64,000 nucleotides of DNA from the sequence record OP380601.1; one strand, given 5' to 3'. Positions 2,819 to 63,263 of this stretch are shown one piece after another. Position 1 is the stretch's first letter, and the number at the start of each line of letters is the position of its first letter. The notes below the pieces were generated by a model. The model saw only the letters and a list, made by a program, of their open reading frames with translations, had not been told where the DNA came from and ran no database searches. The position numbers and the translations under genes were made by a program.

Positions 2819-2940
2819 TCGATGATGTGGAGTTGATTAAGGATATAGAGTATTTCATCTATAAAAGCGATCTAGTTCGTGCATCCAAACTAATTAATCT
2901 ATATATGTTGAAAAAATATGTTGAAATGATAAATCGTTAG
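2815..2940 (+). CDS. small hypothetical protein, 41 aa
   Basis: Hand-translated, ATGA overlap. Confidence 0.45.
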   Translation: MIDDVELIKDIEYFIYKSDLVRASKLINLYMLKKYVEMINR

Positions 2941-2947
2941 TGTATAC
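2920..2947 (+). promoter_or_regulatory. early promoter
   Basis: TTGAAA-16-TATACT; TCGTTAGT/ACTAACGA inverted repeat around -10. Confidence 0.55.
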
Positions 2948-2979
2948 TACTCATATCAACTAACGAGAGGGAAGAAATT

Positions 2980-3120
2980 ATGGTAATCGCACTTGGATTT
3001 GTTGCTGGTGTTTGTTTCGTTCAGTCTGTACGAGCTACCCGCGCAGCATATCAAAAGGCATTCACCACTGGTTATGTAATAGCCGGTATTTCTTCCCTTT
3101 ATTGTTTTGCTATTTCATAA
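2980..3120 (+). CDS. small membrane protein, 46 aa
   Basis: GAGG SD; hydrophobic MVIALGFVAGVCFV... Confidence 0.6.
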   Translation: MVIALGFVAGVCFVQSVRATRAAYQKAFTTGYVIAGISSLYCFAIS

Positions 3121-3129
3121 GGGGATACT

Positions 3130-3267
3130 ATGAGTTCTTCATTGTTTTTATATGGATTTGTTATGGGTATTTTGTCACAATTTGTACCAACAATGAAAAT
3201 GAAAATTGGTGTGTATTCAATCCTAGTGATATCGATCATATTGGCAGAAATATATCTTCCTAAATAA
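3130..3267 (+). CDS. small membrane protein, 45 aa
   Basis: GGGG SD; two hydrophobic segments. Confidence 0.55.
   Translation: MSSSLFLYGFVMGILSQFVPTMKMKIGVYSILVISIILAEIYLPK
3259..3266 (+). promoter_or_regulatory. late promoter (CCTAAATA variant)
   Basis: Same octamer precedes five minus-strand late-type genes. Confidence 0.6.
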
Positions 3268-3296
3268 AGGGTAAGACTCACCTTAAGGAAAATAAT

Positions 3297-4214
3297 ATGT
3301 TAGAAAATAAACATTTCTTTTCTCGACTATTGAAAATCGAGGAAAGTTCGGCGGAAAGTCGAAATCGCAAAGTCGAATTATCTAAAGACCAAGAGTTTAC
3401 CCTGAGTAAACAATCAAAATTACCCGTGACTATGCGGGTAGGTCCATTTAAAGTTCAAGCTTCTATCCACGCCCAAGCTCGGGCACATCAACGTGCTGGC
3501 GATAAATCCGCCGAAGAGTGGAAAGAGTTTGCCCGTAAGATTGTGAAGCATACAGAAACCAACAAGATTAAAGGTGGAACTTATATGTTTCACTCACAAT
3601 CTGAAAACCGTTCAGTTGTTGCTAGTGTAAAAGGTCGAGAAATTAACATCGTAACCGTATTCCCTAAAGGTACTGGCGGAAAGATCTCTCATAAACAACT
3701 GGCGGCTGGTCAGAAAAGCGCCTTAATGGAATCTTTGCTTGAATCTCTTATGATCCATCCAGATTTTAAAGGAATGATGGATGAGGCTAAACAATTACTT
3801 GACCATGATGTAGATTCTGTTATAATCTTTGATATTGAAGAGAAATTGATGGAAGAAGTTATGATCAATGAGAATATGAGTGGCGCAATTGAATATGTAG
3901 ATACTCCGGTTGGCGAAAGGGAGACTCGTTCGATTGCGCAATTTGCACAATTGGTCACAAAAGATAATAAGTCATTTCCTCTTATGATTCCGGATCGTCA
4001 TGATACTAGTTATTTTGGTGATGGGGTTGCTAGAGTTGATATGTCAGGTGGCGGTCGGTTTGGTGGTCAGAAAACATTTGTTGTTAAATTAGATCTTAAA
4101 AAAGGAACCGTATCATTTCCCGATAATGATAGCGATGATGATAAGGATTTCGAAAAACCAGTAAAGTTTAAGAAAGTAATCGTATTCGATAAAGTTGCTG
4201 CCAAAAGATTCTAA
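3297..4214 (+). CDS. putative internal head protein with BECR-like RNase domain
   Basis: Late promoter; N-terminus FFSRLLKIEE; SIHAQARAHQR...NIVTVFP motif. Confidence 0.5.
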   Translation: MLENKHFFSRLLKIEESSAESRNRKVELSKDQEFTLSKQSKLPVTMRVGPFKVQASIHAQARAHQRAGDKSAEEWKEFARKIVKHTETNKIKGGTYMFHSQSENRSVVASVKGREINIVTVFPKGTGGKISHKQLAAGQKSALMESLLESLMIHPDFKGMMDEAKQLLDHDVDSVIIFDIEEKLMEEVMINENMSGAIEYVDTPVGERETRSIAQFAQLVTKDNKSFPLMIPDRHDTSYFGDGVARVDMSGGGRFGGQKTFVVKLDLKKGTVSFPDNDSDDDKDFEKPVKFKKVIVFDKVAAKRF

Positions 4215-4228
4215 TAAGGAAAAATGAA

Positions 4229-4501
4229 ATGAAAAAATTTAACGAGTTAAACGAAAGGTTGGAAGTATCCATGCTGAGTGAATCAAAAGACTTGATCAAT
4301 AAAGCATTCAAAGATTCTATTGCCGAATTTTTCAATACTTGGATTGAAAAACACGAACTCAAGTTTGGTTCTTTCGATGCTAAGGCTAAATGGTCTGGTG
4401 AGCAACTGACCAAGAAGACTACAATCGGTAAAGCCGCCGTCATGTTTGCTATGTCAAATAACAAAGATGTTGTTGATGCAGTAATGAAAGCGAGAGGTTA
4501 A
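4229..4501 (+). CDS. putative internal head protein
   Basis: MKKFNELNERLE..MLSE resembles T4 capsid-targeting sequence. Confidence 0.55.
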   Translation: MKKFNELNERLEVSMLSESKDLINKAFKDSIAEFFNTWIEKHELKFGSFDAKAKWSGEQLTKKTTIGKAAVMFAMSNNKDVVDAVMKARG

Positions 4502-4503
4502 AA

Positions 4504-4836
4504 ATGTTAGATAACAGTAAATTTTTCCAGCGCATTGACGAGGCTCAGGTTTTGAAGACCTCAAAAGACTATAACCGTATTGTCAATCAATATATTTCTA
4601 TGTTGAGTGCGGTTCAAGCACGTATGACCACTAGCGGGATCCGTGATGCCAAGAAGTATTATGAGGTTCAACAACACGAATGGAAACGTTGGGTTAAAGA
4701 AAACGTAGACTTGACAAAAACAAACATCAGCCCAATAGAAACATTCGGGCAGATTAAGTTTAGTCGTTCTAAAGAAGATACACAAAAGAACTTCAATACC
4801 GCTTTCGATAAGCTGAACGGTATGATGAAGAAATAA
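4504..4836 (+). CDS. putative internal head protein
   Basis: MLDNSKFFQRIDE/A, gp21-type I-x-E cleavage motif. Confidence 0.5.
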   Translation: MLDNSKFFQRIDEAQVLKTSKDYNRIVNQYISMLSAVQARMTTSGIRDAKKYYEVQQHEWKRWVKENVDLTKTNISPIETFGQIKFSRSKEDTQKNFNTAFDKLNGMMKK

Positions 4837-4839
4837 TCT

Positions 4840-4889
4840 ATGGGATCAGGCAAAATAATGCTTGATCCCATTTTTGTTTCTGATATGAT
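4840..4889 (+). terminator. terminator fused to early promoter
   Basis: ATGGGATCAGG/CTTGATCCCAT stem + TTTTGTTT; TTGATC-16-TATGAT starts in 3' arm. Confidence 0.75.
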
Positions 4890-4914
4890 GGTGTCTATGA
4901 CGAAGGAGAAAGTT

Positions 4915-5205
4915 ATGAAAATCCAATTTATCAATGAAGACGTTCGGAAAGTTTTGGAAACTCACGGTAAATCCCTAGCTGGCCGAAACGAATGGCTTAT
5001 CGATCTCCCAAAAAGTTCAAACTTTATAATCATACACATGTCCGGTAATCCCCTTCGTGAAATAGATAATGCAGAAGTGGTTAGCTGGTCACTCAATGGT
5101 CGGGATGTTTATGAAGTGATTAAGGAGATCCACCAAGACGATTATCGTCAGACTTACATGGATATGCTCCATGTTATGATCAGCCCAATGTTGGAGCGAG
5201 TATAA
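4915..5205 (+). CDS. hypothetical protein
   Basis: AAGGAG SD before ATG 4915. Confidence 0.75.
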   Translation: MKIQFINEDVRKVLETHGKSLAGRNEWLIDLPKSSNFIIIHMSGNPLREIDNAEVVSWSLNGRDVYEVIKEIHQDDYRQTYMDMLHVMISPMLERV

Positions 5206-48230: not shown

Positions 48231-49583
48231 ATGAAAATAGTTGAACGTTCTATTACAAGTTATATTGATAACGAAGCAAAAGAATTTACTTTCTACGTTA
48301 TTGTAAATCGGGCTCTACCATCATTGATTGATGGTCTAAAGCCATCCCAACGATTTGTTTTATATTCAGCGATCAAACATGCCAGTCTTGATTTCAAGAA
48401 AAACGCTTATTTGTGTGGTGTATTGTCTGATTATGGCTACCCCCACGGGGAAACTTCAGCTTTTGATGTTGCTTCAAAAATGGCAACTGATTACGCCAAC
48501 AACTATCCAGTGTTGGAAGGTAGAGGAAACTTCGGTTCCCGTGCTAATCGAGATGCAGCAGAACCGCGATATATTTTTTGTAAGTTGAATAGCAACTTCC
48601 ATGATATTTTCAAAGATGAGGATCTACTTTTAAAGAATGAAATCGTTTCATATTCCGTTCCTAAATTTTACCTTCCTGTTATTCCATTTGTTTTGTTGAA
48701 CGGGATTACTGGTATTGCATCAGCATACGCCACCAATATTCCACCACACGATATTCATAGCGTTATCGATGAATGTGTTAAATATGTAAAAACTGGGAAA
48801 TGTGATAATCCTCAAGTCAAATATCCGTCTTTCATTGGTAAGGTAAACACACCAGAAGATGGACAATGGACGAATGAGGGTGTTTATGAATTGCAAGGTA
48901 AAACTAAGCTAACAATTAAAGAAATCCCAGTTAGCTATGACCGTATTAAATATGTATCTACACTAAACAAATTGATTGATTCGGATCAGATTGTCGGGTA
49001 TGATGAAATTGAGGGTGAGGGTGATTTCACTTTCCGAGTGACGTTGAAACGGGATTTTGATACATCTCACGAAAACATAATGAATAAGTTTGATCTACGT
49101 GAGAATATTAATCCGAATTTAGTTACCATCGGACCAAATTCAAATATGGTAACCCGAGAAATGGATTTGAGAATTTATAAACATTCTCGCGAATTGATCG
49201 CGGACTTTATAAATTATCGACTTCCTATTGTAGATCAACGTATCAAAAATATGATTGATACGTTGACCAAAAAAATTCCGGAACTTAAAGCAAGGGTTGA
49301 ATTTATTCGCCTAGCTCGCGATGGTAAGGTCAATTTTAATCAACCAAAGAAAGCTATGATAAAGCAGGTTGAAGGATTGATGGAGCCAGAATTGGCGGTA
49401 TTTTCTGATAAAGTTGTCGGTATGCCAATATTCAACATGACCGATGATGAAATTGCACGTCTTAATAAAGAATATGAACAAGCGATTTCAGACCTTAATT
49501 ACTGGAAGAATACAAACTCCAAGAAAGAGTATCTGAAAGATCTATCTACACTTAAAAATGGGCTTAAGAAAAATGACATTTGA
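48231..49583 (+). CDS. 52: DNA topoisomerase II medium subunit
   Basis: NRALPSLIDGLKPSQRFVLY, PHGETS, GNFGS..AAEPRY active-site Tyr. Confidence 0.95.
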   Translation: MKIVERSITSYIDNEAKEFTFYVIVNRALPSLIDGLKPSQRFVLYSAIKHASLDFKKNAYLCGVLSDYGYPHGETSAFDVASKMATDYANNYPVLEGRGNFGSRANRDAAEPRYIFCKLNSNFHDIFKDEDLLLKNEIVSYSVPKFYLPVIPFVLLNGITGIASAYATNIPPHDIHSVIDECVKYVKTGKCDNPQVKYPSFIGKVNTPEDGQWTNEGVYELQGKTKLTIKEIPVSYDRIKYVSTLNKLIDSDQIVGYDEIEGEGDFTFRVTLKRDFDTSHENIMNKFDLRENINPNLVTIGPNSNMVTREMDLRIYKHSRELIADFINYRLPIVDQRIKNMIDTLTKKIPELKARVEFIRLARDGKVNFNQPKKAMIKQVEGLMEPELAVFSDKVVGMPIFNMTDDEIARLNKEYEQAISDLNYWKNTNSKKEYLKDLSTLKNGLKKNDI

Positions 49584-49998
49584 TAATGATGTATTTGTAA
49601 ATTTATATAAAAAAGAAAGTAGTTTGATTCATGGATGGAGAAATTTCATCATATCATCTTCTATTATTCTTATTATGGCAATTATTCTAATTGCTAATGG
49701 TGTTTTATACCCATATACATTCTTGTTCGCTGCCGCAACGATCTATTCGCTGGTAGATTTGATTATGTATCGTCAATTCGGAAAATTGCGAGAGATTCAA
49801 TTTGGCCCTAAATATAGTCACCCGTATTTATTGAAAATGATGAAATCTAAATCTCTAGATTCAAATAATATCAATAATATGGATAACTCGGAAATAAAAA
49901 GTCTGGCGAATCGTTCGATGGTTATTCTTACATTAGTTGACATTATTTCCGTATTTTTGATTGCATCTGGTATTCACTATGTAATTAATCTATTCTAA
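49573..49998 (+). CDS. membrane protein
   Basis: Three TM segments. Confidence 0.75.
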   Translation: MTFDNDVFVNLYKKESSLIHGWRNFIISSSIILIMAIILIANGVLYPYTFLFAAATIYSLVDLIMYRQFGKLREIQFGPKYSHPYLLKMMKSKSLDSNNINNMDNSEIKSLANRSMVILTLVDIISVFLIASGIHYVINLF

Positions 49999-52037: not shown

Positions 52038-55000
52038 TTAACTAACACGCTGCCACAAAGAAGTATTCCAACGAGCATATGTTCCTTCAAGAACATAACC
52101 CATCAATCGCCAGTTACCCGGAGGTACGGATGATGATACGTTATTACCTTCAGCAGAACACCAACGCAAGTTGCTACCAGCAGTAACAAATCCCGGACCT
52201 CTTTCTCCGATATTAACAGCGGTAGTCATCATTGCGAATTGCCCTATTGCGGAATAACTAGCCCCTGCAAGTTGGTTACCCGCAGCTTGGGCAGCAGGTG
52301 GAGGGTTGTTGGCTGAATACACCCGAGCACCACCATCATATACACCAGTACCGAAAATGGTTGAGGCGCAAGTTATTGGCTGATAAAAATAGAATCCACT
52401 TCCAGCATTCGTAGTAAAGTGAGAATATCCAGAGTTCTTTGGACCCATTTCAAGATACGTGCTACCGAGATTTATCCTAAATTGACCCGCAGTAGATGGA
52501 ACAATAGTAACGTTACCACTAACAGTACCACCAGACAGAGCCAATGCCCCAACAGCAGCAGCCGTAGGTGGGCGCAACGAATCGTAAGTCAATGCCCATG
52601 CAGACCAATCGGTATAATATGTTCGAATGTATCTAACCCCCGTAGCATAAACCGTATATTCTTGGATTATTCCAGCAGCTTTCGTAATAACCAATGCCCC
52701 CGCTTGTGCTGTTGGGTAATTGTTGGCTGTGCTGGCATTTGAATTTAAGTCCTGATAGTAATATCCTGGGGTTTGGATATTATTCAAGTTTGCAGCAGTA
52801 CCAAGATGGATAGCGTTAGCCGGTGTCTGGGTTGACAGCGAACTCTCAAGATAATCTTTCCGCACCAGTGAACCCGCAGTTGTTCCTTGGTTAACCAGAG
52901 AAATTGGGTCTTTACTTAGTGATATACTATCTGCACCCACTCTTATATAAGCTGTATGACCATAGCTATAAAGGAATGTATCAGCAGACCCAGCACCACC
53001 TTGACCAACATACCAACGACTTGCACCTGTTGAGTCAACCCCAATAAGATATTGTGCTGACGTTACTCCTAATGTTGTACTTTTCAGTGCAAGAGGTAGG
53101 CTGGTTGATGACTGAACTATTAGCTGACCAGTCATAGTATCGCCAGATTTTGATACCTGTTGTGCTATTAGACCATCAACGTAATCTTTGCGGGTTAAAG
53201 AATTTGCTTCAGTACCCTGAGCAGCAGATAGCAATACTTTTGGAGCAGTCAAGTTACCAGTCATGGTATCGCCGGTCTTTGTAACCTGTTTAGCACACTC
53301 AGAAATTACAAAGTCTCTTCTAGCCGCCGAGTTAACTTCAGTACCTTGAACCGCAGATAGCAATACTTTTGGAGTGGTTAGATTACCAGTCATGGTATCG
53401 CCAGTTTTACTAACTTGCTTTGCCAACTCAGCATTTATTTCAGATGTGGTCAAAGTACCAATATCGGCAGGAGATGGTTTATTAGCAGTTGTGTATATAT
53501 CAGCAGTACCATGTTTCAGATTACCAGCACCACGAATAATTGTGTTGTTGTTATCTACACCCACGGTAAGATTGCCATCGTTTATGTTTCTGGAAATCAT
53601 AAACATGTTTACAAACGATCCACCGATTATATTATATAGTCCAGAAGTAACCCCATTATCAGCCAAATATAATCTACGTTCAGACCTTCTAACACCAACT
53701 TGTGGTTCAGCAGTAGTTCCAGCGTCTACAATTAGGTTACCGGTCATAGTATCACCGGCTATATTAACGACACCTAATTCTGTTGAAGTTGGTTTATATC
53801 CTTCGTGATATATCTTTTGGTTAGAATATTCAAGACTTCCGTTATCTTTAAGTTGCAATAACTTAGAAGATATACCATTTCGGAAAAATACATCAGTAGT
53901 CCCAGTAGATATAGTTAACTTATCTATCCCATCTCTAACGCTATGAAAGTTATTGGCAATACGAAGTGCCCCCGTCATGGTATCGCCAGTTTTAGATACC
54001 TTAGTACCTACTTCCGCATCTACATAATCTTTACGGGTTGAACTGTTTACCAAACTACTTTGTGTGGTATTCTGCAAAAAGTCATCGGCGGTAACTCTAC
54101 CAGTATTTATTTGTACCTTTCTAGCCGCATGGGTAAACTCAGCTCCCATTTCTCTATTAATAGCTAAAATTGAACTATCGGATACAGTACCATCAGCCCT
54201 ACGAAGTCTAGACGAGAAATATAGTGATCCATCATATTCACCCGCAGTTGCGGTATTGGTTACCATTCCTAAAATTCTAGATAGTTGATCCCCTGAGTGT
54301 GGGTCGTATCTATTTGCAGAACCTGCACGGAAAGATATTTCACCTACGGTATAATACGTCCCCGGGGCAACTGTATCCCTATACTTCTCTTTGGTATAAG
54401 ATACATAAGGATATACAGAATCGTCAGCTCCTACAGTATTTCTACGAAGGATACCAGTTCTATATGTGTTTACTGTTTCCCATTGACCAGAAGGAACCCA
54501 ATCAGACCACCCATCAGTTGCATTTATCCAAGTACGAGTGAATTCTCTTTGGTTTGTTGCACTTTGAGCGGTAGCCCAATACATAAACTTCTGAATAGTT
54601 AGGTTATCAAAAGCCCGTTGATATACTTGTAATATACCTGTATGTCCGGTTGATGTAGCTGTGTTATCAACTCCATTTGCCCAAGAACCTTCAACCGTGA
54701 AATTCCCGTTAGTCTTAGCCAAGTTGAAATCACGAACGTTTCCAGTGATTGTAAGAGCGTTTGGAGCGTCACCAACACCAAGACCCATACCACCAACCGG
54801 TTGCTTGTTAGAAGTTGAATACAACTCAAACCAAGGCTGCCAAACATTGATATGTTGACGACGAACAAACACCCTATCAGACCCATAGGTAAAGAACATC
54901 TGAGTATTGGCACCATTACCCCAACGAGTTACAAGTAATGTAGAACCACTAGGTCCAGTACCATGTGGAGTGTTTACTGTATTAGCAAATATGCCATAGT

Positions 55001-55784
55001 TACCCGGCATGGTTGCGTTATTACAATCATCATCAGTTGGGCGATCATAAATAGCCATTGCACTAATGTCTTGTGGAGTAGGCATATTCCCACGATGGAG
55101 AATATCATAGTTTACCCCACCCTGAAGAACTTGAGGTTGTATGCCAGATGCCATACTAATTCTGAATTGAGACAAAGGTGTACCAAACCATCCAGACAAC
55201 ATCATCTTTTGATCTGCAATATCTCTATCTTTTTTACCGGATTGAAAATATCCAATAGCTCCAGAAACTACGATTCTTTGTGCGTATGTGTCGTCCATAT
55301 TTTCAAGACCGGAATTTGAGGTTGCTGTAATTTTCCCTTGTGAAGAGAAATTACCAGTAGTAGCTAAATTTCCATTTACCGTATCCCCATCTCTATTAAC
55401 TACGTTAAATGGATGGTTGTCCAATTTAGTTTTATCTACCGCACTCATCGAACCCGCAGCAGTTGGAGTTGCCGGATCTATAGATACAGTCGGATTTATT
55501 CCGGTAGTTACTCTAATAGGTGTAGTTCCACTAACTGATTTAACTGATGTGGAATCTTTACCATCTACGTATGATTTGTTTGTGGCATCATTAGCCAATA
55601 CAGGAGTAGGAACTGTAGCACCTGTAGTAAAATCTTTTTTTCCGGCGATAGTCTGATTATTTTTGCTATCTACCAGCTCCATATCCTTGTAGAATATTTT
55701 CCCATCTTGAGGGGAAACCGGTAGGTTTGTTTGTGTCCAAACCAGACTTCCCCCAGCAGTAGATGAACTCTTCAATTCTGCCAT
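52038..55784 (-). CDS. 36: long tail fibre, gp36-like N-terminus, pyocin-knob-like domains
   Basis: MAELKSSSTAGGSLVWTQTNLP resembles T4 gp36; repeated KTGDTMTG fibre motifs; three knob-like domains. Confidence 0.8.
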   Translation of the reverse strand: MAELKSSSTAGGSLVWTQTNLPVSPQDGKIFYKDMELVDSKNNQTIAGKKDFTTGATVPTPVLANDATNKSYVDGKDSTSVKSVSGTTPIRVTTGINPTVSIDPATPTAAGSMSAVDKTKLDNHPFNVVNRDGDTVNGNLATTGNFSSQGKITATSNSGLENMDDTYAQRIVVSGAIGYFQSGKKDRDIADQKMMLSGWFGTPLSQFRISMASGIQPQVLQGGVNYDILHRGNMPTPQDISAMAIYDRPTDDDCNNATMPGNYGIFANTVNTPHGTGPSGSTLLVTRWGNGANTQMFFTYGSDRVFVRRQHINVWQPWFELYSTSNKQPVGGMGLGVGDAPNALTITGNVRDFNLAKTNGNFTVEGSWANGVDNTATSTGHTGILQVYQRAFDNLTIQKFMYWATAQSATNQREFTRTWINATDGWSDWVPSGQWETVNTYRTGILRRNTVGADDSVYPYVSYTKEKYRDTVAPGTYYTVGEISFRAGSANRYDPHSGDQLSRILGMVTNTATAGEYDGSLYFSSRLRRADGTVSDSSILAINREMGAEFTHAARKVQINTGRVTADDFLQNTTQSSLVNSSTRKDYVDAEVGTKVSKTGDTMTGALRIANNFHSVRDGIDKLTISTGTTDVFFRNGISSKLLQLKDNGSLEYSNQKIYHEGYKPTSTELGVVNIAGDTMTGNLIVDAGTTAEPQVGVRRSERRLYLADNGVTSGLYNIIGGSFVNMFMISRNINDGNLTVGVDNNNTIIRGAGNLKHGTADIYTTANKPSPADIGTLTTSEINAELAKQVSKTGDTMTGNLTTPKVLLSAVQGTEVNSAARRDFVISECAKQVTKTGDTMTGNLTAPKVLLSAAQGTEANSLTRKDYVDGLIAQQVSKSGDTMTGQLIVQSSTSLPLALKSTTLGVTSAQYLIGVDSTGASRWYVGQGGAGSADTFLYSYGHTAYIRVGADSISLSKDPISLVNQGTTAGSLVRKDYLESSLSTQTPANAIHLGTAANLNNIQTPGYYYQDLNSNASTANNYPTAQAGALVITKAAGIIQEYTVYATGVRYIRTYYTDWSAWALTYDSLRPPTAAAVGALALSGGTVSGNVTIVPSTAGQFRINLGSTYLEMGPKNSGYSHFTTNAGSGFYFYQPITCASTIFGTGVYDGGARVYSANNPPPAAQAAGNQLAGASYSAIGQFAMMTTAVNIGERGPGFVTAGSNLRWCSAEGNNVSSSVPPGNWRLMGYVLEGTYARWNTSLWQRVS
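53131..53420 (-). repeat. 129-bp (43-aa) tandem repeat in fibre gene
   Basis: GTCAT.GTATCGCC units at 53131, 53260, 53389. Confidence 0.85.
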
Positions 55785-55821: not shown

Positions 55822-55829
55822 TATTTAGG
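55822..55829 (-). promoter_or_regulatory. late promoter CCTAAATA
   Basis: Upstream of fibre gene. Confidence 0.8.
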
Positions 55830-62378: not shown

Positions 62379-63227
62379 TTATTTCTTCATTATCATAGCC
62401 CAAGTTTCCGGATTTGGAATATAATCAGCAATTTTACCAACAATGGCTTTATCCAATTCAGTTGCCTTCATCGGGGCTTTACCTTGTTGTTTCACCCTAA
62501 TATAGTTGGCTTCTTTGATGTAACTACCACCTTTACCAGACTTGGCAAGTTCCGAGTCAACCCCCACTTGGTTAAAGGCGATATACCAATCACCATCCGC
62601 ATAGTTCTTAGCACCTTCACCCATCGCCATTAGGTTTTTAAAGGTCATTGCTGCACCTTCATGGGTAGATACTAGAATTTCAAGAGGGACTGTACGACTA
62701 CGCTTATTATTCTGATCGATAGCAACATCAACTTTGTTCATAACCCATACAATATGAACGTTTTCTTTTTCATATCCAAGATCCCTAACTTGTTTTGCAA
62801 TTTGAGCCATTTTACCCATATCTTTCAAGGTAACGTCAAATATAATATTGGGTTTCCGTCCTTCTGGTGCGGCAAGAACCCCATCAAACACCCGCTTATC
62901 CATTTTCTTGGTAGTCTTATATTCAGACGCAAGTAGATTATGGAGAGTAGATACGTTCTCTGGCTTCTTAAGATCAAACTGAGTAATATCGTGACCGGTT
63001 TCTCGCTTGATACGAGCAGAAAGCTTTGTAGACGCCATAGCCAGTTCTTTAACGCGATCAACATCAAGAACAATACCGTCCATACCTACTAATTTCGATG
63101 TTACAAAGCCCTTACCGCTACCGGCACCGCCCGCAAGAATAAGAACGTTTCCAAATTTCGGGTATGCTTTTTTACCAAATACCATCAATTTTTCTTCCAA
63201 CTTTACAAATTCACGAAATGTTTTCAT
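62379..63227 (-). CDS. P-loop kinase (zeta-toxin/AAA_33-like) with capsid-targeting-like N-terminus
   Basis: MKTFREFVKLEE; LAGGAGSGKG Walker A; DVDRVKE; IIFDVT; RxRxVP. Confidence 0.75.
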   Translation of the reverse strand: MKTFREFVKLEEKLMVFGKKAYPKFGNVLILAGGAGSGKGFVTSKLVGMDGIVLDVDRVKELAMASTKLSARIKRETGHDITQFDLKKPENVSTLHNLLASEYKTTKKMDKRVFDGVLAAPEGRKPNIIFDVTLKDMGKMAQIAKQVRDLGYEKENVHIVWVMNKVDVAIDQNNKRSRTVPLEILVSTHEGAAMTFKNLMAMGEGAKNYADGDWYIAFNQVGVDSELAKSGKGGSYIKEANYIRVKQQGKAPMKATELDKAIVGKIADYIPNPETWAMIMKK

Positions 63228-63255: not shown

Positions 63256-63263
63256 TATTTAGG
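63256..63263 (-). promoter_or_regulatory. late promoter CCTAAATA
   Basis: Upstream of kinase gene. Confidence 0.75.

Follow-up and report, generated by a model that had tools for sequence, protein, structure and literature searches.

The window analysed here comprises bases 1-64000 of the genome of Aeromonas phage avDM6 (OP380601; Straboviridae, Ishigurovirus), and the locus in question is a cassette at 3259-4889 in which a late-promoter box is followed by three tightly packed genes (ORF1, ORF2 and ORF3, spaced 14 and 2 nt apart) and by a combined terminator/promoter element (Table 1). The gene calls agree with the GenBank annotation of OP380601, and the arrangement that had originally been predicted, i.e. 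three ORFs behind a late box and ending at a terminator, was found in full. That the surroundings are otherwise early, as was also claimed, is a reasonable description: the plus-strand block 1-51455 has asiA at its end and contains a single further copy of the late core CTAAATA, at 49808.

Table 1. Features of the avDM6 cassette and its boundaries (positions in the window)
Feature	Position	Strand	Basis or description
Sigma70-like promoter with inverted repeat over its -10 (PeSL-like)	2921..2966	+	promoter scan, repeat search
Two small hydrophobic ORFs (46 aa and 45 aa)	2980..3120 and 3130..3267	+	ORF calls, conservation
Late-promoter box CCTAAATA	3259..3266	+	Aeh1-type CTAAATA core
ORF1, 305 aa	3297..4214	+	leader, basic N-domain, variable acidic C-domain
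ORF1 leader, aa 1-16	3297..3344	+	ends I-E-E/S
ORF1 conserved basic N-domain, aa 17-180	3345..3836	+	RelE/ParE-like core at aa 44-123
ORF1 C-domain, aa 184-305	3846..4211	+	variable, acidic
ORF2, 90 aa	4229..4501	+	leader, basic mature part
ORF2 leader, aa 1-18	4229..4282	+	ends L-S-E/S
ORF3, 110 aa	4504..4836	+	leader, basic mature part
ORF3 leader, aa 1-13	4504..4542	+	ends I-D-E/A; same type as ORF1 leader
Intrinsic terminator overlapping sigma70-like promoter (PeSL-type)	4840..4889	+	stem 4840-4871 plus T run

The box lies 30 nt ahead of the ORF1 start codon (ATG at 3297), and its proposed identity as a late promoter is borne out by genome-wide enrichment before gene starts as well as by conservation in relatives. 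CTAAATA is rarer than expected in the window (7 copies versus 16), while 36 of its 55 genomic copies take the form CCTAAATA, in which an extra C is preferred and which shows the highest positional enrichment. Two-thirds of these copies (24 of 36) are located 20-70 nt upstream of starts with a Shine-Dalgarno sequence and ATG, in the right orientation, compared to a background of 6.4% for such placement, 2-10% for control words, and 1 of 23 copies for the T4 late box TATAAATA. The genes preceded by CCTAAATA include gp24, neighbours of gp23, and portal, neck, baseplate and fibre genes. Across four diverged relatives the cassette box is unchanged, and the block TCCTAAATA is invariant before the orthologues in phages 65, Asswx_1 and ZPAH1, where the flanks diverge. 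Aeromonas phage Aeh1 is reported to have CTAAATA as its late consensus (Nolan et al. 2006, PMC1524935); the avDM6 promoters resemble that type in their core and in their position upstream of late-gene orthologues, but differ in favouring the extra C. Judged by its sequence and placement, the cassette promoter is of this phage's late type, and the transcript would start a few bases downstream of the box.

The strong terminator that had been proposed at 4840 was likewise recovered. At 4840-4871, a stem of 13 bp (6 of them G-C) leads into a T run; no other site in the first 12 kb looks as much like a terminator, and the pairing is preserved in relatives, with 6 of 11 pairs being compensatory. Its 3' arm doubles as the -35 (TTGATC) of a sigma70-like promoter for the next gene (4862-4889, TATGAT with TG), an overlap that is also present in phages 65, Asswx_1, ZPAH1, CC2 and L016. 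Intergenic elements that combine a sigma70-like promoter with an effective stem-loop terminator are known as PeSL (promoter-early stem-loop) elements (Arbiol et al. 2010, PMC2839356), and flank ORFan modules in the hyperplastic regions of T4-type phages (PMC2839356). By its features, the site at 4840-4889 is a PeSL-type element, closing the cassette and restarting early transcription. On the upstream side, a sigma70-like promoter at 2921-2948 (TTGAAA-16-TATACT, 10/12 in the promoter scan) carries a 13-nt inverted repeat (2934-2946/2954-2966, 85% complementary) over its -10. As in PeSL cassettes, the stem overlaps a promoter element at either boundary (the -35 at 4840-4889, the -10 at 2921-2966); unlike in those cassettes, the PeSL-bounded module of avDM6 holds an internal late promoter, which suggests that part of the module has been switched to late expression. 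Another sigma70-like site, within ORF1 (3799-3826, 11/12), is kept in CC2 and lost in Asswx_1, and was therefore set aside as a probable by-product of coding.

The operon had also been called insulated, which applies to its 3' end, where the terminator is located, and not to its 5' end. Between 2948 and 3259, no convincing terminator was found in avDM6, the one candidate being a weak hairpin with 3 G-C pairs inside a coding region, although one is present on the 5' side of the late box in ZPAH1 and in a metagenomic relative. The two small membrane ORFs, which the element at 2921-2966 would drive, are also conserved in phage 65 and in Asswx_1 (OP380601 has no annotation for the second); transcription from the element probably continues into the late cassette. 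Since early transcription from 2921-2948 meets no clear stop, expression of the cassette may not be purely late.

As predicted, all three proteins start with a leader of 13-18 residues that ends in (I/L)xE and is followed by S or A. Capsid-targeting leaders of T4 are 10-20 residues long (PMC5694885), with positions 4, 7, 8 and 10 being important for the targeting and processing of IPIII, and the internal proteins of T-even phages are basic (PMC9026906); the mature parts encoded here are basic as well (pI 9.5 for ORF2, 9.8 for ORF3 and 9.6 for the ORF1 N-domain). The leaders were compared with those of T4 through published positional rules (PMC9026906) rather than through the letters of the T4 leaders, a capsid-targeting sequence (CTS) being taken to have a hydrophobic or aromatic residue at positions 4 and 7, L, I or V at 8, and E at 10 (after PMC9026906). 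Within the family of the ORF1 domain, 21 of 66 members (32%) fit these positions, versus 3 of 661 control starts (0.5%); under a looser leader rule, the counts are 44 of 66 and 86 of 661. The leaders of the avDM6 proteins themselves depart from the exact 4/7/8/10 spacing. ORF1 and ORF3 have a leader of 13-16 residues with an aromatic pair at positions 7-8 that occurs nowhere else in the genome, and the start of ORF2, M-K-x-F-x-E-[FL], is common to only two other avDM6 genes, encoding a Zeta-like kinase (window 62379-63227) and a J-domain protein, both of which lie directly behind late promoters.

The N-terminus of gp24, moreover, ends in L-S-E/S, as does the leader of ORF2. Of the genes that directly follow the 24 late promoters, only those with cassette-type leaders, gp24 and one gene adjoining gp24 have (I/L)xE by residue 16; none of the tail genes among them does. 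A homologue of ORF3 in the non-T4 phage Plateaulakevirus TS9 is without leader, and a natural ORF1-ORF2 fusion keeps an I-N-E/S-K-D site internally. The avDM6 genome is annotated for a prohead protease, a scaffold protein and gp68 at 115247-117309. The literature on this phage group yielded no virion proteome or transcript data; the comparative leader data strengthen the reading of these N-termini as putative capsid-targeting sequences.

ORF1 is split by PHROGs into phrog_17629 and phrog_7322, in line with its two-domain layout. The N-domain belongs to a widespread family comprising at least 65 clusters of proteins in T4-like phage contexts. His58, Arg66 and Glu145 are nearly invariant in it, the share of each residue in its alignment column being 97% or more. 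The C-terminal module, in turn, is swapped or absent among relatives, in which four states were found, many members consisting of the N-domain alone. In other proteins the N-domain is found on the C-terminal side of a SAM lyase or of a Zeta/AAA_33 kinase, fusions that would suit a carrier or binding role no less than an enzymatic one. ORF2, which in one relative is fused behind the ORF1 N-domain (fusion P0007, aligning at E 4e-34), and ORF3 belong to narrow families of 3-4 clusters, all from Aeromonas phages.

Whether the ORF1 N-domain is an RNase, as was proposed, is less clear. The structure model is confident (pLDDT 89.7, topology b-b-a-a-b-b-b) and contains both elements on which the proposal had relied, the SIHAQARAHQ helix (57-66) and the INIVTV strand (115-121); an earlier model from 10 sequences (pLDDT 58) was excluded from structure searching. 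The top meaningful Foldseek matches include HigB2 (5ja9_C, probability 0.90, TM 0.53, rmsd 3.9 over 94 columns), ParE (6xrw at probability 0.80, 6x0a, 8c26) and RelE (1wmi), all of them sub-threshold, with E-values above 0.05 (0.057 for the best meaningful one) and a target TM of 0.45-0.53. The topology and the recurrence of HigB2, ParE and RelE lend weak support to a BECR-type domain. In Pfam/NCBIfam, no RelE, ParE or HigB profile was found for the cassette proteins at E up to 1, nor for the 66 members of the family at E up to 0.01, and other toxin profiles were not matched either. Neither the three proteins nor the family gave anything significant in Pfam, NCBIfam, PADLOC or PDB-sequence searches, and no neighbouring gene matches an antitoxin family. 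An H-A-x-x-R-x-x-x-R plus V-T-V pattern is typical of DUF4258-type BECR toxins, an identity that was dropped when the Pfam search gave no such match, and matches to ydhR, DEK_C, Cas2b and CARF were below cut-offs and discarded. Like RelE/ParE/HigB toxins, the core of ORF1 is predicted to have two helices on a three-stranded sheet plus an N-terminal hairpin, as well as conserved basic and acidic residues; it differs from them in being part of a larger domain (with extra helices at 5-39 and 147-168), in its late phage cassette setting, in its leader and in having no recognisable antitoxin. An RNase role is plausible but unproven. An enzymatic effector, most likely one that cleaves RNA, would be the single most likely role of the domain, though at well under even chances.

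On the whole, the cassette probably encodes a new set of T4-type internal proteins, i.e. proteins that are transcribed late, packaged, processed and injected. A gp55-type sigma factor would start late transcription at the CCTAAATA box, giving a transcript that spans ORF1-3 and stops at the 4840 terminator. By analogy with IPI-III and Alt of T4, the N-terminal propeptide of 13-18 residues would dock each product to the scaffolding core of the prohead, after which a gp21-type prohead protease would cut it off behind the Glu of (I/L)xE. The basic mature proteins would then stay beside the DNA in the head and be delivered together with it into the next host, which would allow them to act before any phage gene is expressed. 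Of these proteins, ORF1 would combine a conserved RelE/ParE-like domain, with its near-invariant His58, Arg66 and Glu145, with an exchangeable C-terminal module. On a bolder reading, which is rather speculative and which we consider doubtful, the family of the ORF1 N-domain would be a widespread, unrecognised class of capsid-delivered RelE/ParE-fold nuclease effectors with a His/Arg/Glu site, hitting host RNA or defence at time zero and being exchanged as a module with other leader-tagged cargo (SAM lyase, Zeta-like kinases, J-domain protein, ORF2 domain).

It is unlikely that ORF1-3 are made late without being packaged, as assembly, lysis-timing or late regulatory proteins whose leader is an amphipathic helix with an (I/L)xE by chance. 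Such a motif is indeed present by residue 16 in 13% of control starts, the leader of ORF1 and ORF3 is off the canonical CTS spacing, and the cassettes of ZPAH1 and L016 contain an extra leaderless acidic ORF. Against a chance motif, the leader is kept across a very diverged family in which the adjoining linker is not, is strongly enriched over controls and lost in the non-T4 homologue, and among late genes is confined to head-associated ones. The timing of expression allows for a different reading, in which the avDM6 cassette is read early as well as late through transcription from 2921-2948, its products being ordinary early accessory proteins that are boosted late. Given the stretch up to 3259 without a convincing terminator, and a late box that overlaps the last codons (L-P-K-stop) of the upstream ORF at 3130-3267, this is a serious possibility, albeit not the expected one: in ZPAH1 and L016 a G+C-rich hairpin with a T run directly precedes the late box, and the box is invariant while its coding context changes. 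A hairpin of the T4-lysozyme type, which would sequester the ribosome-binding site through base pairs between UUCCU and the Shine-Dalgarno AGGAA, is predicted in the read-through RNA only. It would also count against early synthesis, but shuffled sequences do equally well (z 0.16 to -1.2), and it was rejected as evidence.

If the proteins are packaged, the ORF1 N-domain could still be non-enzymatic, serving as a carrier or nucleic-acid-binding module for exchangeable partners, and Glu145 (in an L-M-E/S context) could mark a second protease cut that would release the C-terminal module. The swapping or loss of that module, the fusions to SAM lyase, Zeta/AAA_33 kinase and other domains, the basic pI of 9.6 and the hydrophobic-x-E found at the Glu145 column in the members that were read are all compatible with a carrier. 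A carrier is none the less somewhat improbable. Near-invariance of a His, an Arg and a Glu is rather what a catalytic site would show, many members of the family have no other domain, and cleavage at Glu145 is made less likely by the strand modelled at residues 139-143 within a confident fold. Very unlikely, finally, is a ParE-like gyrase poison instead of a RelE/HigB-like mRNA interferase: 6xrw, 6x0a and 8c26 are among the top Foldseek matches (probability up to 0.80), but those to HigB2 and RelE are equally weak, a ParE profile was not matched, and the conserved His/Arg/Glu set is, to our knowledge, not a ParE hallmark.

Internal proteins are the only phage products known to us that are already inside the host as the DNA arrives, and very little has been established about T4-like head cargo outside the T-even coliphages. 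The cassette suggests that in T4-like phages of Aeromonas and Vibrio the cargo is a different set, which late box plus leader would mark and to which the toxin-fold domain, the Zeta-like kinase and the J-domain protein would belong. If this is borne out in virions, the combination of late box and leader could serve as a simple rule for recognising injected proteins among those now called 'hypothetical' in hundreds of genomes.

In comparison with IPI, IPII, IPIII and Alt of T4, the cassette likewise consists of predicted late, non-essential-looking genes in a plastic region, with short putative propeptides (10-20 residues in T4) that contain hydrophobic or aromatic residues and close with (I/L)xE, and with basic, mutually unrelated mature proteins in a phage that encodes both protease and scaffold. 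It differs in that ORF1-3 resemble none of the named T-even Ip proteins in sequence (none being among the search matches), in the late box (CCTAAATA instead of TATAAATA), in the longer and differently spaced leader of ORF1 and ORF3, and in one putative cargo having a toxin-like predicted fold and a modular C-terminus. All three of Ip1-3 of T4 block Type IV restriction enzymes (PMC12373910). Should the enzyme-effector reading be true, T4-like heads would carry a shuffled toxin-type toolkit, beyond stoichiometric inhibitors such as IPI.

The first 64000 bases of Aeromonas phage avDM6 (OP380601; Straboviridae, Emmerichvirinae, Ishigurovirus) match the window at 100% identity, and phages 65 and 65.2 share ~86% identity with avDM6 across this region. 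The plus strand carries a block of ~140 small ORFs (1-51455, asiA being the last); after it comes a block on the minus strand whose late genes include hoc and a gp5-like gene. The latter block also holds a large, late hypothetical protein adjoining the gp5-like gene, directly downstream of its own late box (see table). All genes in the region are annotated as 'hypothetical protein'. The layout proposed in the original prediction, i.e. a late-promoter box, three ORFs and a terminator, is borne out by direct reading of the sequence, and the simplest account of it, on balance, seems to be that the cassette is late and encodes internal proteins of the T4 type, packaged with the DNA.

Features of the late cassette and of related loci in avDM6 (window coordinates unless marked genome)
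Feature	Position	Strand	Remarks
Small hydrophobic ORF	3130-3267	+	45 aa, conserved; unannotated in OP380601; 65p296 in phage 65
Late box CCTAAATA	3259-3266	+	followed by Shine-Dalgarno and ATG at 3297
ORF1	3297-4214	+	305 aa
Sigma70-like site	3799-3826	+	TTGACC-16-TATAAT, 11/12, with TG
ORF2	4229-4501	+	90 aa; 14-nt gap after ORF1
ORF3	4504-4836	+	110 aa; 2-nt gap after ORF2
Terminator hairpin	4840-4871	+	13-bp, with T run
Gene after the cassette	4858-5205	+	annotated start 4858; conserved ATG 4906
Large hypothetical protein	52038-55784	-	1248 aa; CCTAAATA box at 55822-55829
Zeta-toxin-like P-loop kinase	62379-63227	-	282 aa; Pfam Zeta_toxin 30 bits, above cut-off; next to hoc; CCTAAATA box at 63256-63263
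J-domain protein	genome 72953-73966 (L004:12953-13966)	-	337 aa; DnaJ 40 bits; outside the window; late box upstream

The remainder of the public avDM6 record was read as well, and every CTAAATA was listed genome-wide. Genes for the capsid vertex, portal, neck, tail completion, baseplate, fibritin and long tail fibre have the late box 25-45 nt 5' of their starts, and the major capsid gene has it ~80 nt upstream. In total 24 of the 36 genomic copies of CCTAAATA (67%) are found 20-70 nt 5' of a Shine-Dalgarno-preceded ATG in the correct orientation, against a background of 6.4% and 2-10% for related control words, while the late-promoter box of T4, TATAAATA, is so placed in 1 of 23 copies. The same CTAAATA core was reported for Aeromonas phage Aeh1 by Nolan et al. 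(PMC1524935). The 51-kb early block has just one other CTAAATA on its plus strand (49808-49814); it lies inside a gene (49573-49998), ~200 nt 5' of the next start. The block TCCTAAATA, which precedes the ORF1 orthologues, is unchanged among avDM6, 65, Asswx_1 (Ceceduovirus) and ZPAH1, with divergent flanks. Such conservation could reflect coding, as the final codons of the small hydrophobic ORF (L-P-K-stop) spell the box, and the two overlap in this way in three of these four phages; however, it is not due to coding constraint, since in ZPAH1 and a metagenomic relative the box stands free of coding, directly 3' of a G+C-rich hairpin and its T run.

The description of the cassette as insulated holds for its 3' end, where the hairpin is kept in all relatives and 6 of 11 pairs are preserved via changes on both sides. 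A sigma70-like promoter, with its -10 at 4884-4889, takes its -35 (TTGATC; TTGAC in relatives) from the 3' arm of this hairpin, an arrangement that matches the PeSL ('promoter-early stem-loop') of T4-type phages, which ends upstream transcription and restarts early transcription (PMC2839356). A second PeSL-like element is present at 2921-2966, and two small membrane ORFs and the late cassette lie between the two. Insulation does not extend to the 5' end in avDM6: from the promoter at 2921-2948 to the late box no convincing terminator was seen, and early read-through into the cassette is therefore possible. UUCCU just 5' of the box is predicted to pair with AGGAA of the ribosome-binding site, in a hairpin confined to read-through RNA, but this was rejected as evidence, its stability being no greater than in shuffled sequences. 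The annotated start of the gene after the cassette falls within the terminator hairpin; relatives conserve the ATG at 4906 (M-K-I-Q-F-I-N-E-D-V), which lies downstream of the PeSL promoter, with a good ribosome-binding site in front. In Aeh1 (L011:1683-2510) and PX29 (L012:1662-2543), a late box precedes an 85-aa membrane-protein gene overlapping an ORF1-domain homologue, and a terminator plus sigma70-like promoter again follows this pair. The top sigma70-like match in the first 12 kb lies within ORF1, at the two-domain boundary and just 5' of an in-frame ATG. As CC2 retains it at 10/12 and Asswx_1 has lost it, this match is probably incidental to the coding sequence.

All three proteins begin with a leader ending in (I/L)xE, as originally claimed: M-L-E-N-K-H-F-F-S-R-L-L-K-I-E-E/S in ORF1, M-L-D-N-S-K-F-F-Q-R-I-D-E/A in ORF3, and M-K-K-F-N-E-L with L-S-E/S at residues 16-19 in ORF2 (a slash marks the supposed protease cut). 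The ORF1/ORF3 pattern is unique to these two among all Shine-Dalgarno-preceded ATG starts in the genome, and the M-K-x-F-x-E-[FL] start of ORF2 recurs in two genes only, each directly after a late box, namely the kinase (M-K-T-F-R-E-F-V-K-L-E-E), a candidate second packaged effector, and the J-domain protein (M-S-K-T-F-S-E-L-F-E/S). A similar J-domain gene lies two genes past the ORF1 homologue in Vibrio phage vB_VmeM-32, after TATAAATA. The capsid vertex protein starts with a 13-residue stretch ending L-S-E/S, and its T4 counterpart has a short propeptide removed. Among the first genes behind 24 well-placed late boxes, only ORF1, the kinase, the J-domain protein, the vertex protein and a single gene next to it reach (I/L)xE by residue 16, and no tail, baseplate or fibre gene does. 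T4 propeptides span 10-20 residues, and in IPIII the first 10 are enough for head targeting, with residues 4 and 7 serving targeting and 8 and 10 processing (PMC9026906; PMC5694885); the avDM6 leaders match in length and in the (I/L)xE end, but depart from this exact spacing.

The N-termini of the ORF1-domain family are strikingly similar to one another (66 members): in 21/66, versus 3/661 avDM6 control starts, positions 4 and 7 are hydrophobic or aromatic, position 8 is L/I/V and position 10 is E, and 44/66 versus 86/661 follow a looser leader rule. The leader-ending Glu of ORF1 is common to 83% of the members aligned there. In PHROGs, ORF1 falls into two parts, N (residues 18-180) and C (184-298), and in close relatives the N-part is followed by the avDM6/CC2-type C-part, by another C-part (65-like phages), by a domain resembling ORF2 (P0007, which matches ORF2 at E 4e-34 and keeps I-N-E/S-K-D at the junction) or by nothing (ZPAH1, Aeh1, PX29, a Vibrio phage). 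ORF2 and ORF3 are confined to Aeromonas phages, and the ORF3 homologue of TS9 (Plateaulakevirus, non-T4) starts at the equivalent of residue 22, i.e. without leader. Taken together, the family data and the leaderless TS9 homologue argue for the leader being separable from the rest of the protein, a module specific to heads of the T4 type. An acidic, leaderless ~100-aa protein is encoded within the late cassette of ZPAH1 (L009:2212-2511) and the metagenomic relative (L016:3324-3629), and upstream of and outside it in avDM6 (2133-2426), so cassette content is shuffled among relatives. In phage 65 (GU459069, L002:5380-6260) the ORF1 orthologue carries two frameshifts relative to an intact relative and is annotated as two CDS (65p295, 65p294); the older record may contain a sequencing error, and 65.2 has the gene intact.

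The model of ORF1 residues 1-180 is confident (pLDDT 89.7, pTM 0.75; 66-sequence alignment), with helices 5-21 and 30-39, a hairpin 45-55, helices 57-66 and 72-88, strands 93-100, 105-112 and 115-121, ending in a short strand plus two helices. The BECR/RelE-like fold originally proposed is plausible but unproven: Foldseek gives high-probability matches to HigB2 (5ja9_C; prob 0.90, TM 0.53 on target, rmsd 3.9 over 94 columns), ParE (6xrw, 0.80; 6x0a; 8c26) and RelE (1wmi), but no PDB match at all reaches E 0.001, and no curated profile matches the domain. Assigning it to a named toxin family is thus not supported. At least 95% of members keep each of His58, Arg66, Trp75 and Glu145, and ~90% keep Ser100, Thr120 and Pro123; metal-independent RNases of the barnase/RelE type rely on a conserved His/Arg/Glu set. 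An RNase reading of the domain is considered plausible, at fairly low confidence. The mature parts are basic (pI 9.6 for the ORF1 N-domain, 9.5 for ORF2, 9.8 for ORF3), and the C-part of ORF1 has an acidic pI of 5.2. The domain was found in 65 clusters (conserved core ~residues 25-126) when 1.84 billion representatives were searched with a profile; viral structure models place it within larger phage proteins, and in some members it follows an S-adenosylmethionine lyase domain or a Zeta/AAA_33-type kinase on the C-terminal side, P0039 being a fusion to a Zeta-like kinase. The two family contexts examined were T4-like phages, with Gp23, gp32 and DsbA as neighbours.

In the favoured reading as packaged internal proteins, the cassette proteins would be produced late in infection and docked onto the prohead core by their leaders, which the prohead protease encoded by avDM6 would trim; the trimmed proteins would stay with the DNA, reach the next cell alongside it and might be active there. 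A packaged internal-protein cassette is in itself an already known kind of system. The leader has long been used to recognise Ip genes, and T4 Ip1-3 block Type IV restriction enzymes (PMC12373910). What is new relative to these is the cargo, a conserved domain with a predicted toxin fold and exchangeable partners, together with the leader variant and the setting of a late box within a PeSL-bounded early module.
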